From NCBI RefSeq assembly GCF_016432865.1, contig NC_067401.1, positions 283,154,001-283,218,000 of the forward strand: a stretch of DNA of 64,000 nucleotides. Direction: 5' to 3'. The DNA is from Antechinus flavipes (taxonomy: Eukaryota). The notes beneath the pieces were generated by a model. The model worked only from the letters and a program-made list of their open reading frames with translations, ran no database searches and was not told the origin of the DNA. Shown here in pieces: positions 39,687 through 62,177 of the stretch. The translations under genes and the position numbers were made by a program. How positions within the stretch are numbered: the stretch's first letter is position 1; every line of letters starts with the position of its first letter.

Positions 39687-41399
39687 ATTTTCCTGTTCTC
39701 TTACTGTATCAGATGGGCTTAAATAGCTCTCAAATGCCATGTGTGACCTAAGAACAGATTTGATCCTAAGAGGGAAGTGAAAAAGTTCTCCTAACATCTG
39801 CATCTCAAAGTGAGACTGTATTTTAATAGAAGGCCTGCCTCCACTATGACTACATTGTTTTTCTGTCCAATGTGGCTCTGACTCAGCATCAGTTAATTAA
39901 CCCTCCCAAAGAGGCTGGATTTCTCTGGTCTAATTATCATCTTCAGAGCTTTCTGAGATCTCTTTTAGGAAGTGCTCATTCAGTTTGACACCCGTACCAC
40001 TTCTCCCAAAGGAGAGCCCTGATTCTTCTAAGGAGCCAGCGTCCCCTGTGGTATTTCATGCTATAGCAGATAAACCAGGGTGCTGAGGGCAGCTTTCAGC
40101 TCTGCTAATATCCCCTGGTGGGTGTTGATTATAGCCTGTCCAAGACCTTTAGACACAGATGCCATTCTCAGATGAAGTAAGCCTTCTTCACTTTTTAGCT
40201 AACAGAACCACAGAAAAGTTTTGTCTTTCTTTTTTAAAGAAGGAAATATATATAGGCACAGTTGTGATTGTGGACTGTTTTTTTTTTTTTCTTTAATTTA
40301 TTTTGATCTTCCTGTAAACAAATACTCAAATGTCCACTTCATTGTATGACTAAGCTGGTATCAGTAGGTTGGGACTGGGTGTGTGTGTGTACGTGTGGGT
40401 GGGTGTGTACGCACATGTGTGTTTAAAATGTTAGAAAAGACACTGCATCCTGAGGCAGAGGGAAGGGATGATAAATAAATCTGAGTATCTGAAGCCAGCA
40501 GGAAAAATCGGAGACTTGCCTTTCGTGCATCTAAAGAGTGTTTGCAACAGAGTGGCTGTCTATTAATGGATCTTATGCATCATTGTTTCTCTGAATTGGA
40601 GGATTCCTTGCTGGGGGAATAGGTCCATTGAAGGAAGTAAAGCATCTGGTTTGTTTTGTAATGAGGAGCAGGAATGCTAGGTCCTTGCTCTTAATAATAA
40701 ACAAACAGGACATTGTATGCCATCATCACAGGATGTCCTTCCTTCAGCCAGACTGGCTTGAACAGGAGGAAAAGACTGACAAGAACTCAGAACCCACTAA
40801 TTACTAACCCAATACTTCTGTCATTTGTAATACACTCTAAGAAGGATCAATCTATTACACTCTCTAATGGTGAAATTATGAATGTTTTATATTTTATTTG
40901 GGTATTGAACTTCAGACTGGTAGTTTGGACTTGTGAAAAGAAGGGAAAGCAAAGAGATTTCTTTGTAGAAGGACTCTGATTTCTTCCCATTTCAATATTC
41001 CCCAAAGATCTTTAAAGAGGGAAAGTTATGCCGAATATAAAATCATTTAATTACCTACTTCTTTGGAAGCTTATACAAATAAATACAAGCCTTAAAATGC
41101 TTCACAGGAAATACACGCTTCACAGGAAATTACTCGAAACCTAGATCTCTGAATTGTATGGCATTATATATTAAATATTAGATACCCATTTCCCTCCCCC
41201 CAGGGACTCCCGCCCACCCCTGCCTCGGCGTGCCCGATGTAAAGTTTGCATTCCCTAACCAGGACTTTTTTTATCAGAACAACAGAAGTTTTAACTAAGA
41301 CTTTTTTTTTTTTTAATGAGAGATGTGTTTATGATACTTTAAGCCTCAGCTGTAAGAAGGGAATAGTTAATGAATTTGTTGCACAAAGCAGATAATGTC

Positions 41400-41886
41400 A
41401 ACTCTTTCACTTTGAGGTTAAGTGTGTTTCGAGGGGAAGTAAGAAAGTTCCAAGTGAATGGTGAACTTCACATGTAATAAGAGGAAAACCTATAAAGCCT
41501 GAACTATTTGGAAAGGGGGGGGGGGAATCCCTCTTTTCGGGCTCGTTCGGATTGGCTTTTGACTGAATTTATACAGGTAGCTCCACCCCCTTAGCTTATT
41601 GAGTAAATGCTCAGTCTGTTTGGTTAAGCAGACAAAGTGCTGTAACACTCAGCCCTCCAGTGTTTCGGCGAGGCAAAAGCACTAAGTGCCGCAGCACCTG
41701 TCTGACAGACACGGAGAGAAAGACAGAGAAAGAGAAGAGAAAAAGAGGCTTGCGGGGGGTGGTGGCGTCGGAGAGACCGTAGAAAAAGGAGTTAACTCTG
41801 GAGGTGTGAGTCAGTTTTTCTCTAAGCCGGCAATTGGAAGGACGAAGAAATGTTTACTGTGTAGAAATGAGTGTGACTTACCTTAG
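41400..41886 (+). promoter_or_regulatory. PRDM1: PRDM1 main (alpha) promoter and 5'UTR; TSS probably ~41615-41630
   Basis: Locally CpG-enriched; ATTGG (CCAAT box) near 41551; CAGACAAAGTGCTGTAACACTCAGCCCTCCAGTGTT resembles the start of human PRDM1 mRNA as recalled; lies directly upstream of coding exon 1. Confidence 0.75.
41522..41531 (+). promoter_or_regulatory. NF-kB site GGGGAATCCC
   Basis: Perfect GGGRNWYYCC match ~100 bp upstream of the inferred TSS; NF-kB-dependent induction from the mouse Prdm1 first-exon region is established. Confidence 0.7.
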
Positions 41887-41928
41887 ATGTTGGATTTTTA
41901 TTTGGAAAAACTTGTGGATACGACTTTG
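41887..41928 (+). CDS. PRDM1: PRDM1 coding exon 1 (MLDFYLEKLVDTTL)
   Basis: 42 nt followed by donor GTAAGA; matches human MLDICLEKRVGTTL (10/14 as recalled); phase 0 with exon 2. Confidence 0.85.
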
Positions 41929-43679
41929 GTAAGAAATTTTTGATTCTATTTCTTTTCTCTTGAGTTGTTTAAACTTTTTTTTTCTCCCTGCTTAACCAAC
42001 ATAGTAGCAGTTGCAAGCAAGTAATACTTTTGCCTTGGTGCACTCAGGACTTCAAACATGTTTATTATAAGACCTTTTCTCTGCTCCTTATGAATCATTA
42101 ACCCTTTCAGTTCTGAGTGCAATTGTCAATTCATTGAAGTTTCAGTCTCAGTTCTTCTCCCCCCTCCCCATAAGATCAAAGAAGAGCAAATATTCGGTGG
42201 TGGCTTAATTTTAAAACCTTTATTATTAGTTAATATTTATTTAGCATCATGACTGTACATGCTGGTAAAAGCCACCCATAGACAGGTCTGTCTAAATTTT
42301 GAACAGTGTAAGACATATGTCCCAGGTTCTTCAATTTGGATGCTCCAGCTCCCCCCCTCCCCCGCCCCCATTAATTATGGCTAAATGAAAGAAGATAAAG
42401 TCTACTTTTAACATCTTCCTTGGGACATTATCTTATTTTGAAAATCAAGTGAGTATTCTCCTTTCATGTATAGAGATTCTTTGTTAAAATTACGAAGTAT
42501 GATTTTTAACAGAAGAGTGTTTGAGACACTTTTTTCTTTTTGTCATCTAGTTTTTGTGTAATAGTATGAGAGAGGGTAACTTTTTTGGGGGGAAGAAAAT
42601 AGAGAACTACTTCTCTCTTATTTGGAAGGCAAATGTTATTACTAATCTAGAGGATAAGGCAGGTTTGGGGAAAGTAGCCCATCACTAGTTGAGGAAGGGC
42701 TTACTTACTCTCTCACTTTTCTATATTTACTATAACTTTCATTATAGTAAATTGAAACACTTATGATTTCTGAAAACGGAATGAATGGTCAAAATTTTCA
42801 ACAGAAAGTACTATTTGTAACCCAGGTGGCTGAAAGGAATTTTCTCCAGGGATATTTACTATTGGACAGTTTTGCATTTTTTGTTGTGCCTTTTCATGAT
42901 GGCGTGAGATGCCAACAAATCACAGAAACCCCATTTTTTCTTCTGTTTTGGTCCAAATGAGTGCACTCCAATGATTTGTGACTAGCTCTACCAGGATGCT
43001 GGCCAAGATGCAGCCTTTTGCTCTCTTCCTTGCCTAGAGGATGAAAGAAAGCAAAGCAGAAGGGGGAGGATAAATAGGGGTGGGGGGGCAGGTTGTTTTG
43101 AAAGTTGTTTGTGCTTTGGAAGCTGGTGGGAAAGTTCAGTCTTCCCCATTTGGAAAAGGCAGGCTGGGTTCCGCTCCTGCAACACACGCGCTTTCCATTT
43201 TTAGCTTCATTCAGACGCAGACAGCAGCTCCTTCCTCTTCCTCTCCTTGTTTATGACACTTTTTTTTTTCTCTGAGGCAGCTTTTCCACAGGCACTGAGT
43301 GGTCTGGTGGCCATGACCCCAGGTTTTCTTGGATACGAGATTGGGAACCCAGAAAGTGGGTTCCGTGCTTTTGAGAGGTAAAGCCAGAAATAGATCTCTG
43401 AGCTGATTTGTTTTGATTTTTTTTTTCCTCAGCGAGTCTGCCTCACTTTGCTTTTTTGTTTTTTGTTTTTTTAAACTAAGCTTAGCATTTGAAAACCTTG
43501 CTCCATTCAGCCCGGGCAATCTCGTTTATACTGCTCTTTTTGGCTGTTACTCAACTGTACCAGCTCTTCTGCATAGGCTTTTCAAGTGCCACAGACTACT
43601 GTATTAGTCACAGTGTCTCAGAGGAAACCACAGAAACTGCAGGACAATGGGGATTAAAGGCTTTTTCCTTCTTTTCCAG

Positions 43680-43928
43680 GCTGCCACCCAGTGTAGCTCC
43701 GACACCGTAAATTTTCCGACCTTGGTAGAGGGGGCAGAGGGAACCATGAAAATGGACATGGAAGATGCTGACATGACTCTGTGGACAGAGGCAGATTTTG
43801 AAGAAAAGTGCACATACATTGTGAATGACCATCCTTGGGACTCTGGTGCTGACGGAGGAGCTTCCATTCAGGCGGAGGCATCTTTGCCAAGGAATCTGGT
43901 TTTCAAATTTGCAACGAACTGCAAAGAG
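43680..43928 (+). CDS. PRDM1: PRDM1 exon 2 (AATQC...[22 protein letters not shown]...ATNCKE)
   Basis: TTTTCCAG acceptor, GTAAGC donor, 249 nt; contains the diagnostic [16 protein letters not shown] motif (ATG at 43746) and the start of the PR domain. Confidence 0.97.
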
Positions 43929-46900
43929 GTAAGCCTCTGCTTTTTTGCTGAAGAAGATTGTCACCTGACAGCCAAATCTCCCATACACTTCTATTGAGGT
44001 CCTATAATCTTGGGAGACTTCTTTGTAAGTACCTGTAAATAATATATCCATTTCATTGCATTCTAATTTTCCTTGAAACAATTTCTGCTTCTCTTCCCTC
44101 CCCCATTCCCCATCATACCAATTAGCAAGCAGTTAAAAGCTTCTGGCAGGCTGTAATGTGCCTAGAAGAGGTATATGCCCAGCATGGGGGTGGGGGGGAA
44201 AAACCGGGGAAGGTAGACCCCTGAGCCAGGTTTTAAACTGCTTGTCAGCAGCCTATGTATCCATTGCCTCTGGCCACTGGATTAAATTGCCTTGGTTGTA
44301 TAATAGCTCTGGGGAGGGGTAGAAAAGTCAAGTTTCCTTGGAAAACACTCTTAATCTTTTCTTTTGTCTCTCTTCAGTTATTAAAGTGCTTTATTCTTTT
44401 TAATGAGCTAGGTTTATTAGCTGTGTTTCTAAAATTATTCCTGAAACATTGACGTGTTTATGAACAGGAGGGATGGTATATAAACTGAGAAAAGTGTCCT
44501 TTGTCAGGATGACTTAAGAGTTAACCACTGTTTATCTGCTGGAGTTCCTTTGCTCCCTGCTAGACTTGTAAATCCCCCCCCCCCAATGTCTGAAGTGGGG
44601 CTGTCCTTTGTTTTTATTTCCAAAGGACTACCTCTGGACCCTGAAAGGACAGTTTGATTTGTGTTCACCCATTTGTGTAACTGTTATAGCTAGGTGTGAT
44701 GTTCAGCTAGGTAATCTGAAAAGCAACCTAACCTCTTTATCTATGGAATTTAGGGCTGTGCCTCTCCCCCCTTTTTTAACCTGTGCTGCTACTGTTCCCA
44801 AATATCTCCTTATCCTTATCCCACTCTAACCCCCCTCCATGTGTAAATTATATTATTGTGTCTTAAGAGAGCAGTGAGAAAGGACTTGTTTGCTTATGAA
44901 AACAGTGTTTGTTTCTGGGAATATTTATTATAGCCATGTAAAATCACTTTCTCTTACTCTTAAAAGTAGCATTTAAAGGACCTGGCAATCTTTTGGGGAA
45001 AGCTTTCTCTCCTAATTTCATGTTCTATAAATTTTTTGTGAATTGGGAGACAAAGTTATCTAAAATAAAGAAAACATTTATTGTATTCCTAAATTCATAG
45101 ATTCAGAGATAGAAACGGGAGCTTAGAGTAAGAGTCTAAACCCCTCATTTTATAGATGAGGAAATAGAAGTTAAATGACTCGCCCAGAGTTACCTAGCTA
45201 GTAAATACTTAACATAGGATTTGAATTCATGTCTTTAGTACTGGACTTCAGGTTCAGCACTAACTATTTACTGCCTCTGATTTATTAAAATTAGAGGCAG
45301 AGGTGTTGGGGAATAGAAGGGGGCCACAGATTTTATATCTACATTTTGTTAAATAATTCGAGTGACAGGATGCCTTTTTATATAATAAACCCTGTCTCAT
45401 ACTAGATTGCTGGAGATGCCCAGAATCCACTATATCCTATGCATCTCATTAAATAGAAACATTTTTCTAAGTAGAACATCTTCAGTTAGTTGTCATAATT
45501 CTTTGACAAAGGCTAACTTGACCTGTTTTGTAAATTGTTTAATGCTAGTTGTTGCTGTGGTTTTAAGAAATGCATTTCCCTTGGCCCCCACCCCCAGTAT
45601 ACAATTTGAAATTTCCAGGAGGAGACTGGGGGTTAAGCCTTCTCTCTTCTTTTGTTCTCCAGGGTTCCCCATTTTATTCAGAAAGCTGCCAAAAGAAACT
45701 GATCTTGATCCCTTATTCTAGTATTTGAGAGATCCTCCCTCTCCTTTAAACAGGCTGTATATTGGTGTGTGCCCTATGTCCCACAGTCAGAATTTATAAC
45801 ATTCTGCCTCATTCTTAGAATTATAGCTTTTTAGAACTGGAAGGTACCATGGAAACCATCCAGCTCTTCACCACCTTTTTACAAAAGATGAAACTGAGGT
45901 TTGGAGTTAAGTGAGTTGCCCAAGGCTACATACTGCTAATTATTGGCCCAGCCTGGACTAAAACTCAGATCTCCTAACACTGACCAATATTCTTTGCATT
46001 AGAACATGATTACCACTTTTTATGTCTCAGCATGATTTTATTTATTTACATGACTATTTGACCCTTCTGAATATCCAGAATGTTATTGATTTAGGAGAGA
46101 TTGTAATTCCTCACAAAGGTGGTTACATGCGAAGTGAGCCCACCTAGGCATCTATTGTTTACCTTTTCCTCTTCTAAATCAAACTTAAAAGAAACAAGCC
46201 ATCTTGGGGGTCCTGGTTGAATCAAACAGGATACAAATTTCATATGCACACTTATTTAACTGTAGCTCTGGAATTTGTACTAGAATGATAGTCTTTGTTA
46301 AAAGAACAATAAATTTCAAAGAATGGAGGGGATTCAACAGGTTTAAGAACAAACATTCATAATTAACAAAATATGCAGGCTGGCATGAATCAGTTTGTTC
46401 TTAGTCATATATCCCATGGGAATTTTTAGAAATTTTTTTGCATGTAGTTTTAATCTGATTTATAAAGTTATTTAAATGTTTTTGTTTAAATGGTAGCTGT
46501 TAAATTACATGTTATTTTTTTCTTTTCCATGACTTTTTTTTTCATTATGAATTTACATATGTATCAGCTCCTTTTTTATTTAAAAAAGTTTCTGCACTAC
46601 TCTCTTGGTGGTTCTAAATTTTATTTAGGTCAATAATGCATTTTAAAGATTCTCTTATTGTTTATTATTATTTCTATAAATAAGGGTTATTTTTAAAGTT
46701 TCATTTAAAAATATGTTAATCCATGCTACTAAACTATTTACTTGTGTCCTTCCTTTTTTGTGGAGACTTGACTGTTGTCCCCCTTAAACACTATTTTTGA
46801 GCATTTAAAAAAATACTAGCTTTGACATTTTATGTATTTGAAAAACTTAAATTCTGAATGTGCTTCTCACTCAATCGGGAAAACTCCTGTTCTGGAAAGT

Positions 46901-61092: not shown

Positions 61093-62177
61093 CCCAAACA
61101 CACATCAGTCCAAAGCAACAAAGCACTGAGAAAAATGAACTTTGTCCCAAAAGTGTCCCAAAGAGAGAGCATAGTGTGAAAGAAATTCTGAAAACTGATT
61201 CCAGCCATTCAAAAGCAAAGAGCTTCTTCCATCCTAACATTTCACCCATCACTCCAGAAAAGGACATGGATGACTTCAGGAAAAACTGCAGTCCTGAAAG
61301 GCCTATATGCCCTCGTGTTATCTACCCAATCCGAGTTCCCAATGCAGAAGACTTGTTGAAAGCTTCTCTGACCTATCGGATGGAGAGACCTACTTACATC
61401 ACTCACTCCCCCATCCCATCATCTACCACTCCTAGCCCTTCAGCAATAAGCAGCCCAGACCAAAGCTTGAAAAGCTCCAGCCCTCATGGTAGCTTGGGAG
61501 ACACAGTTTCACCTTTGGCTCCCATTTCTCAAGAACATCGAGAATCTTACCCTTACTTGAATACACACTATGGCACAGAAGGACTGGGGTCTTACCCTGG
61601 CTATCTACCACCCAGTCATCTTCCTCCAGCTTTCTTCCCTTCTTATAATACTCATTATCCCAAGTTACTTTTACCTCCATATGGTATGAGCTGTAATAGC
61701 CTGAGTACTGTGAACAACATAAATGGCATCAATAACTTCAATCTCTTCCCAAGGTTATATCCAGTCTATGGTAACTTGCCTCATCCCATGTTCAACTCGG
61801 CTACTCTTCCAAATTCATTGCCCTCCGAAGGATCCCGGAGATTGTTGCAACCAGAGCACCCCAGAGATGTTCTTGTACCTGCACCCCATAGTGCCTTTTC
61901 TATCACCAGCGCAGCCACCAGCATGAAAGACAAGCCATGTAGTCCAACGAGTGGGTCCCCAACTGCTGGGGACACATCTGAACATATGATACAACCTAAA
62001 GCTACCTCAACAATATTGGCTGCCAACAGCAGTGAAGAAGCCATAAATCTCATTAAAAGTAAAAGAAATATGACTGGTTACAAAACACTTCCATATCCAC
62101 TGAAGAAACAGAATGGAAAAATTAAGTACGAGTGTAATGTTTGTTCCAAGACTTTTGGGCAGCTCTCAAATCTGAAG
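61093..62177 (+). CDS. PRDM1: PRDM1 exon 5 (Pro/Ser-rich repression region to first zinc finger ...[17 protein letters not shown])
   Basis: TATTTCAG acceptor, GTAGGT donor, 1085 nt, phase-compatible with exons 4 and 6; contains [19 protein letters not shown]. Confidence 0.97.

Follow-up and report, generated by a model that had tools for sequence, protein, structure and literature searches.

A conserved pair of upstream open reading frames at the 5′ end of marsupial PRDM1 as a candidate for translational control of N-terminal isoforms

In C/EBP-alpha and C/EBP-beta, a short upstream open reading frame (uORF) lies out of frame just before the first start codon; ribosomes that have translated it reinitiate at a distal in-frame AUG and produce a shorter isoform, and those leaking past the uORF use the proximal AUG. 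In ATF4, uORF1 and uORF2 are separated by a spacer of roughly 90 nucleotides (nt). PRDM1 (Blimp-1) is a dose-sensitive master regulator of plasma-cell, T-cell and germ-cell fate, and its control has mostly been discussed in terms of transcription and microRNAs. Here we describe a tandem pair of uORFs at the 5′ end of PRDM1, found on the forward strand of a marsupial genome in a 64,000-nt stretch of Antechinus flavipes DNA (NC_067401.1, positions 283,154,001 to 283,218,000; hereafter the window, to which all coordinates without a contig label refer). We give a probability of roughly 55% to the interpretation that this pair is under selection as start and stop codons and sets the share of ribosomes at two in-frame PRDM1 starts. 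Translation of the uORFs, reinitiation and an effect on the isoform ratio are what we infer from the anatomy described below.

Anatomy and conservation of the uORF pair

Ahead of the annotated main start of PRDM1 (the MLD start, ATG 41887), exon 1 contains two uORFs, and uORF1, uORF2 and the main ORF each occupy a different frame (Table 1). The AUG of uORF1 (uAUG1, or uATG1 in DNA) has a G at −3, and its stop codon lies 2 nt before uATG2 (AA, 41865-41866) and 22 nt before the MLD ATG. uORF2, traced over the intron by codon phase, exon by exon, begins with the exon 1 part encoding MSVTYLRCWIFIWKNLWIRL, overlaps the main ATG 41887 out of frame, passes the exon junction through the split codon TG|G, which is read as W, and terminates after a total of 30 codons, 35 nt before the ATG at 43746 that opens the sequence MKMDME. 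The main ATG 41887 is in frame with this ATG and with a further one at 43752, and the distance from the end of uORF1 to the MKMDME ATG is 130 nt in the spliced transcript (64 nt of exon 1 and 66 nt of exon 2). The coordinates of both uORFs, of the main ATG and of MKMDME, together with the peptides, had been given in an initial annotation of this DNA and were all reproduced exactly from the window sequence.

For comparison, orthologous genomic DNA was retrieved by exact-protein look-ups from tammar wallaby (L001), echidna (L002), golden mole (L003), Peromyscus (L004), a caecilian (L005), ground tit (L006) and beaked whale (L008), and was complemented with spliced RNA-assembly contigs from a muroid (L009), frog (L010, L011) and one vertebrate (L007). 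The amniote set consisted of eight sequences (the window, six other genomes and the muroid mRNA; one bird and two muroids are among them), with ground tit as the sole confirmed sauropsid, look-ups for a lizard (P0102) and a turtle (P0047) having returned no DNA record, and the mammalian set consisted of seven (one monotreme, two marsupials and four placental sequences). The DNA comparison was confined to non-human species, a human protein match (P0023) was excluded from all comparisons, and ape and monkey proteins, which over their first 100 residues may equal the human protein, were kept in the protein tallies.

Both upstream ATGs are present in all eight amniote sequences, uATG2 being located exactly 20 nt before the main-ATG position and preceded by a G at −3 in every case. 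Likewise, uORF2 is exactly 30 codons long in 8/8 sequences and stops at the identical codon, TAA in the marsupials and TGA elsewhere, from which the MKMDME ATG is separated by 35 nt, except in the muroids (32 nt). uORF1 has four codons outside the muroids, which have six, and its second codon varies among TTT, TGT, TGG and CGG; the gap between uORF1 and uATG2 is 2 nt in six of the eight and 4 nt in golden mole, and the two muroids have an overlapping ATGA instead. In the latter (L004:3984-4004, L009:238-258), the TAG stop of uORF1 has changed to TGG, and a new in-frame TGA is found two codons on, overlapping uATG2; with termination and initiation sites overlapping in this way, ribosomes could be passed on to uORF2, the frame of which is fused to the muroid protein, as discussed below. 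In ground tit, exon 1 (L006:8459-8537) is GC-rich and diverged, and the MLD ATG is replaced by CCG; uORF1, the 2-nt gap and uATG2 are nevertheless retained nearly base for base, with 62 nt to the donor and a uORF2 of 30 codons. The spliced muroid mRNA contig (L009) contains both uORFs. The layout, which the initial annotation also attributes to human, is represented among placentals by beaked whale and golden mole as well. Because the bases between the two ATGs vary and the lost stop has been replaced, the boundaries of the ORFs, rather than a fixed motif, would appear to be the target of selection.

The surrounding leader provides the background against which this conservation can be judged. 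No ATG occurs in the 225 nt of leader upstream of uATG1, compared with ~3.9 expected from the base composition. In a nine-sequence alignment, only 5 of 245 leader 3-mers are invariant over the eight amniotes; two of them are the uATGs themselves and a third lies within uORF1. All six uATG bases are invariant, as against 26 of the 106 other proximal leader bases (~25%), giving a rough p of ~2e-4 that is liberal because conserved sites cluster. On this comparison of sequences, the uORF pair is conserved beyond the leader background and more than by chance. Loss of the uAUGs or of the uORF2 stop in other species, named in the initial annotation as an outcome that would speak against its proposal, was searched for, and both were found to be kept in 8/8 amniotes. 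The stop also leaves a trace in the main frame: in 41 distinct N-termini, Val-24 is followed by R, K, N or S, and in all eight DNA sequences the codon of this next residue starts with A (AAT, AGT, AGG or AAG; 43705-43713 in the window). This A, together with the third-position G or A of the Val codon, forms the uORF2 stop, and the stop itself may thus be under selection.

The arrangement had been called ancient in the initial annotation, which is borne out for amniotes, mammals and bird having split roughly 300 million years ago, but not beyond them. In the caecilian, the MLD start is present, no ATG is found in the 70 nt upstream of it, and a 2-codon uORF lies at −94. The frog mRNA has uORFs of 14 and 3 codons elsewhere in its leader, the homologous site being without ATG. 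The vertebrate mRNA L007, whose protein is about equally distant from the bird, amphibian and mammal proteins, contains a single overlapping uORF of 31 codons in the other alternative frame. With the homologous uATGs missing from all three, the specific pair is documented for amniotes only; some uORF is nonetheless found in every tetrapod leader examined. The small amphibian uORFs (L005:3907-3915; L011:104-156) lie ~90 nt upstream of an MLD-type start, just after a conserved GCAGCACCT motif.

The two in-frame starts served by this leader have conserved and different contexts. In all seven mammalian sequences, the main ATG is weak (pyrimidine at −3, T at +4). An A occupies −3 of the MKMDME ATG in every sequence possessing it, and the second downstream ATG is invariably flanked by A at −3 and G at +4. 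Both MLD and MKMDME are annotated as isoform starts in marsupials (MLD in P0121; MKMDME in P0123 and P0130), and annotations with the MLD start exist for placentals, marsupials, echidna and caecilians, the bird codon being CCG. In every tetrapod examined, 60, 63 or 66 nt lie between the start of exon 2 and MKMDME, and as these lengths are all multiples of three, the main frame is kept open. Averaged over pairs of the 41 distinct MLD-start N-termini, identity amounts to 85% in residues 1-14, 78% in 15-24, 66% in 25-36 and 88% in 37-100; translation of the MLD extension, under weak constraint, is probable. In echidna exon 2 (L002:5694-5800), the first Met of MKMDME is ACG (Thr), giving TKMGMED, and of these starts only the second ATG and MLD remain.

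The gene model underlying these statements is supported by several sources. The exon 1/2 junction is placed at 41928|43680 (donor GT 41929-41930, acceptor AG 43678-43679), and the first 60 residues of the protein models P0121 and P0131 (same 90% cluster) are identical to the translation of exon 1 plus exon 2 of the window, supporting the junction, with which P0001 (tammar wallaby) and the spliced muroid contig L009 also agree. The region 41000-44200 has zero N bases. Later PRDM1 exons follow downstream, with PR-domain exons at ~51.3 kb and ~55.2 kb and a large exon at 61093-62177, for which the best match is a tammar wallaby protein (91% identity).

Table 1 Features at the 5′ end of PRDM1 in the window (pN/pS, ratio of the proportions of nonsynonymous and synonymous differences)
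Feature	Position	Strand	Remarks
Probable 5′ leader of exon 1 before the uORFs	41625..41849	+	Homology to muroid mRNA L009 (274-nt leader) and frog mRNA L011; 5′ limit approximate
uORF1, ATG TTT ACT GTG TAG, MFTV*	41850..41864	+	Third frame relative to main ORF; context gaagaaATGt
uORF2, exon 1 part	41867..41928	+	uATG2 context gtagaaATGa; 20 codons + TG of split codon
Annotated main (MLD) start and exon 1 coding part, MLDFYLEKLVDTTL	41887..41928	+	Weak context ccttagATGt, T at −3 and +4; phase 0 at donor
Intron 1	41929..43679	+	GT donor, AG acceptor; matches P0121, P0131, P0001, L009
Homologue of 79-nt muroid exon, in intron 1	43476..43563 (approximate)	+	No GT donor at homologous position
uORF2, exon 2 part	43680..43710	+	Last base of split codon, 9 codons LPPSVAPTP, TAA 43708-43710
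Main-frame N-terminal extension in exon 2, 22 codons, AATQ...EGT	43680..43745	+	pN/pS over first 10 codons 0.41 (main) vs 0.83 (uORF2 frame)
MKM of MKMDME, downstream in-frame starts	43746..43754	+	ATG 43746 in ggaaccATGa; ATG 43752 in atgaaaATGg
Rest of exon 2, strongly conserved coding	43755..43928	+	Variable sites 3/5/23 of 35 by codon position

A proposed route for scanning ribosomes

In the predicted mechanism, scanning ribosomes would meet uAUG1 first, and some of them would translate uORF1, which is so short (four codons) that the 40S subunit should be able to go on scanning afterwards. As only 2 nt separate the uORF1 stop from uAUG2 and 22 nt from the MLD AUG, distances too short for the initiator tRNA to be reloaded, both of these AUGs would be bypassed, and the post-uORF1 subunits would reinitiate ~130 nt on, at the strong MKMDME AUGs. 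Ribosomes leaking past uAUG1 would start at uAUG2 and translate uORF2 over the MLD AUG, ending 35 nt before MKMDME; this event would block the long isoform and lower the output, would be largely repressive, and may expose the mRNA to nonsense-mediated decay. The MLD-start isoform would then arise only from ribosomes that leak past both uAUGs. The initial annotation had proposed reinitiation favouring the MKMDME start. The conserved start contexts, weak at MLD and strong downstream, agree with such reinitiation, but the word favouring may overstate the preference.

Several observations weigh against the proposed control by start and stop codons or restrict its reach. The multiple-of-three length between the start of exon 2 and MKMDME, taken with the main-frame pN/pS of 0.41, implies that the MLD isoform is probably made and matters. 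The leader is fairly conserved overall, and part of the ATG conservation may be its by-product; the comparison is limited to eight amniote sequences, with one bird and two muroids among them; and the homologous uATGs are absent in the caecilian, the frog and the vertebrate mRNA L007. Furthermore, that the marsupial mRNA itself contains the uORFs is deduced from homology, and transcripts with alternative first exons, corresponding to other annotated N-termini, would bypass the uORF control.

It is also conceivable that the uORFs are translated but act as general dampeners, through ribosome capture and nonsense-mediated decay, and that the ratio of N-terminal isoforms is not set by them. Both uORF stops are upstream of later exon junctions, as such a role would have it, and uORF2, which covers the first start and ends just 35 nt before the second, offers a poor setting for reinitiation; in the bird, moreover, the uORFs are kept without an MLD start, so that isoform choice cannot be their role there. 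The conservation of a weak MLD ATG context together with strong MKMDME ATG contexts speaks, however, against dampening as the sole role, and a uORF1 that ends 2 nt before uATG2, as in 6/8 sequences, has the geometry expected for bypass. On balance, we regard general dampening as unlikely.

Reading frames of exon 1 and the muroid N-terminus

Exon 1 had been described in the initial annotation as dual-coded, and the substitution pattern among the seven mammalian sequences, in all of which the main and uORF2 frames are both open, bears on this description. Counted by main-frame codon position, the variable sites are distributed 3/5/23 over the 35 codons from MKMDME, as is typical of the third-position excess of coding sequence, and 2/4/4 over the 14 codons of exon 1; the third-position variation is thus 4/14 in exon 1 vs 23/35 downstream (Fisher's exact p = 0.027), and no frame of exon 1 has a third-position excess. 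This pattern fits overlapping constraint, although, as far as these sequences tell, the extra constraint is not frame-specific. The pairwise pN/pS in exon 1 is 0.57 for the main, 0.58 for the uORF2 and 0.49 for the third frame, and as a discriminator of frames the measure fails there, all three lying within 0.49-0.58. Over the first 10 codons of exon 2, the values are 0.41 (main), 0.83 (uORF2) and 1.81 (third), and the overlap in exon 2 has no reduction of synonymous variation like that in exon 1; in this alignment, the C-terminal third of the uORF2 peptide is under no peptide-level constraint. The five codons read in uORF2 only give a pN/pS of 0.32 in that frame, from too few sites to carry weight. 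The description as dual-coded has support in a limited sense only, from the missing third-position excess in exon 1; the three frames score alike there, and the reduction does not extend into the exon 2 overlap.

In muroids, the uORF2 frame forms part of annotated proteins. Canonical mouse Blimp-1 (UniProt Q60636-1) has MREAYLRCWIFSWKNVWVRP as its first 20 residues, followed by CQRLHF...STVQ; mouse isoform 1A begins with MLDLLLEKRVGTTL, in the main frame, and isoform 1B is without residues 1-67 (PMC4009873). The MREAYLRCWIFSWKNVWVRP of the mouse protein is the uORF2 frame of exon 1, so that the identification of the mouse N-terminus with this second frame in the initial annotation agrees with the UniProt data in that paper. 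A Peromyscus model (P0088) has the same structure as canonical mouse Blimp-1, an extra exon of 79 nt (L004:5503-5581, donor CAA|gtac) shifting uORF2 into the main frame. In the mouse sequence, the start of isoform 1B is presumably MKMDME. The block containing the extra exon is situated at the 3′ end of intron 1 and is conserved in all amniotes aligned. Of the seven species aligned, the muroid alone possesses the GT donor, at a site where it is three bases shorter than the others. A mouse-type uORF2 fusion is ruled out for the marsupial, as the window is without the extra-exon donor, and the marsupial uORF2 is consequently a separate 30-codon ORF rather than an alternative N-terminus. The muroid protein N-terminus, from the sequences compared, looks like a uORF captured into protein.

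These data invite a different explanation, in which uORF2 is a true second coding frame, translated amniote-wide as a 30-codon ORF into an active peptide (a tryptophan-rich micropeptide, or a nascent chain acting on its own ribosome), and the mouse N-terminus represents its capture via muroid-specific exonisation of the conserved intronic block. The constant length of 30 codons in 8/8 sequences, the core YLRCWI..WK..W.R kept in mammals, the missing third-position excess in the main frame of exon 1 (p = 0.027) and the reading of the uORF2 frame into protein by the mouse and Peromyscus models are all consistent with it, as are the pN/pS of 0.32 in the five uORF2-only codons and the synonymous TAC/TAT and CTT/CTC changes. 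Against it, the three frames of exon 1 are alike in pN/pS, and in exon 2 the uORF2 frame, at 0.83, lies above the main frame, at 0.41. The peptide varies freely at residues 2-4 and over its C-terminal third; of its first 20 residues, the bird shares no more than M, S, R, two W and K; and the fusion donor is confined to the muroid among the seven species aligned. A coding role of uORF2 is for these reasons rather doubtful, and an active peptide with later capture in muroids equally so.

The intronic block has a feature of its own. Conservation in all amniotes aligned extends over ~240 nt before the exon 2 acceptor (43440-43679) and includes an invariant GGACAATG.GGATTA stretch, in which an ATG (43647) reads in frame across the acceptor into exon 2, over 15 residues; bird, marmot and camel gene models begin at or read through the homologue of this ATG. 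The sequence suggests an alternative start site or regulated intron retention.

Least probable of all is the possibility that the conserved block works at the DNA or RNA level, for instance as a factor site close to the promoter or as a splicing signal by the donor, and that its ATGs and stop are incidental: ATG-free leader blocks, e.g., GCAGCACCTGT and the TGAGTCA-containing block at 41807-41813, are also conserved to frog, and the uniform constraint on exon 1 in all frames would fit a non-coding function as well, but the ATGs never change and the bases separating them do, the lost muroid stop has been replaced by an in-frame stop, the 20-nt spacing and the frame relation are kept despite many indels in the upstream leader, and neither a conserved RNA structure nor an Rfam match was found. 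The uORF region folds only weakly as a consensus (−8.6 kcal/mol; 0 compensatory pairs), and the Rfam scan returned no family, with one sub-threshold chance match outside the uORF region.

Two further observations concern the leader and the donor. The AP-1-like TGAGTCA (41807-41813) forms part of the leader block GGAGGTGTGAGTCAGT, which marsupials, echidna and bird share through conservation and for which placentals have GCGCGTCAG; by comparison with the muroid mRNA contig, this block falls within the transcribed leader. In exon 1, CTTACC (41877-41882), which resembles the 5′ end of U1 small nuclear RNA, can pair with the donor GGTAAG (41928-41933); this 6-bp stem is predicted by the consensus fold in 7/7 species, with no compensatory changes, and might mask the donor in the pre-mRNA.

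PRDM1 among known uORF systems

If translated, the uORF pair would add a translational layer to the control of PRDM1. It may also bear on the disagreement among databases over the N-terminus of the protein, which is given in MLD, MKMDME and mouse M..YLRCWIF forms, and 5′ untranslated region variants creating or destroying these ATGs would be candidates for altered PRDM1 dosage. In the collection of papers searched, none was found to describe PRDM1/BLIMP1 uORFs; there were only co-mentions, mostly concerning ATF4 uORFs or PRDM15/PRDM16. Of the general features of uORF control elements, the pair shows in-frame stops, ORFs upstream of or overlapping the main start, and conservation above the leader background.

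It is worth comparing the arrangement in PRDM1 with those in better-known genes. In canonical mouse Blimp-1, the 79-nt exon joins uORF2 to the main frame, and the donor it depends on is absent in the window and in five other non-muroid species aligned. PRDM1 resembles ATF4 and GCN4 in that its first uORF is short and its second, longer one runs over the main start in another frame. Unlike in these systems, however, the spacer from the uORF1 stop to uAUG2 is only 2 nt in PRDM1 (4 nt in golden mole; overlapping in the muroids), with which reinitiating ribosomes cannot choose between uORF2 and the main start by the level of ternary complex; a delayed-reinitiation switch of the ATF4 type was rejected on the grounds of this 2-nt spacer. 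The closest systems are C/EBP-alpha and C/EBP-beta. As in these genes, uORF1 of PRDM1 is short, out of frame and ends just before the proximal starts, and the two in-frame starts, ATG 41887 and ATG 43746/43752, are both annotated, the distal one lying 130 nt beyond the end of uORF1 in a strong context. In contrast to C/EBP, PRDM1 has an extra uORF of 30 codons that lies between uORF1 and the main AUG and overlaps the latter, and its isoforms differ by just 36 residues. The PRDM1 pair would add a well-conserved case to the established forms of uORF control, by a mechanism that is plausible.

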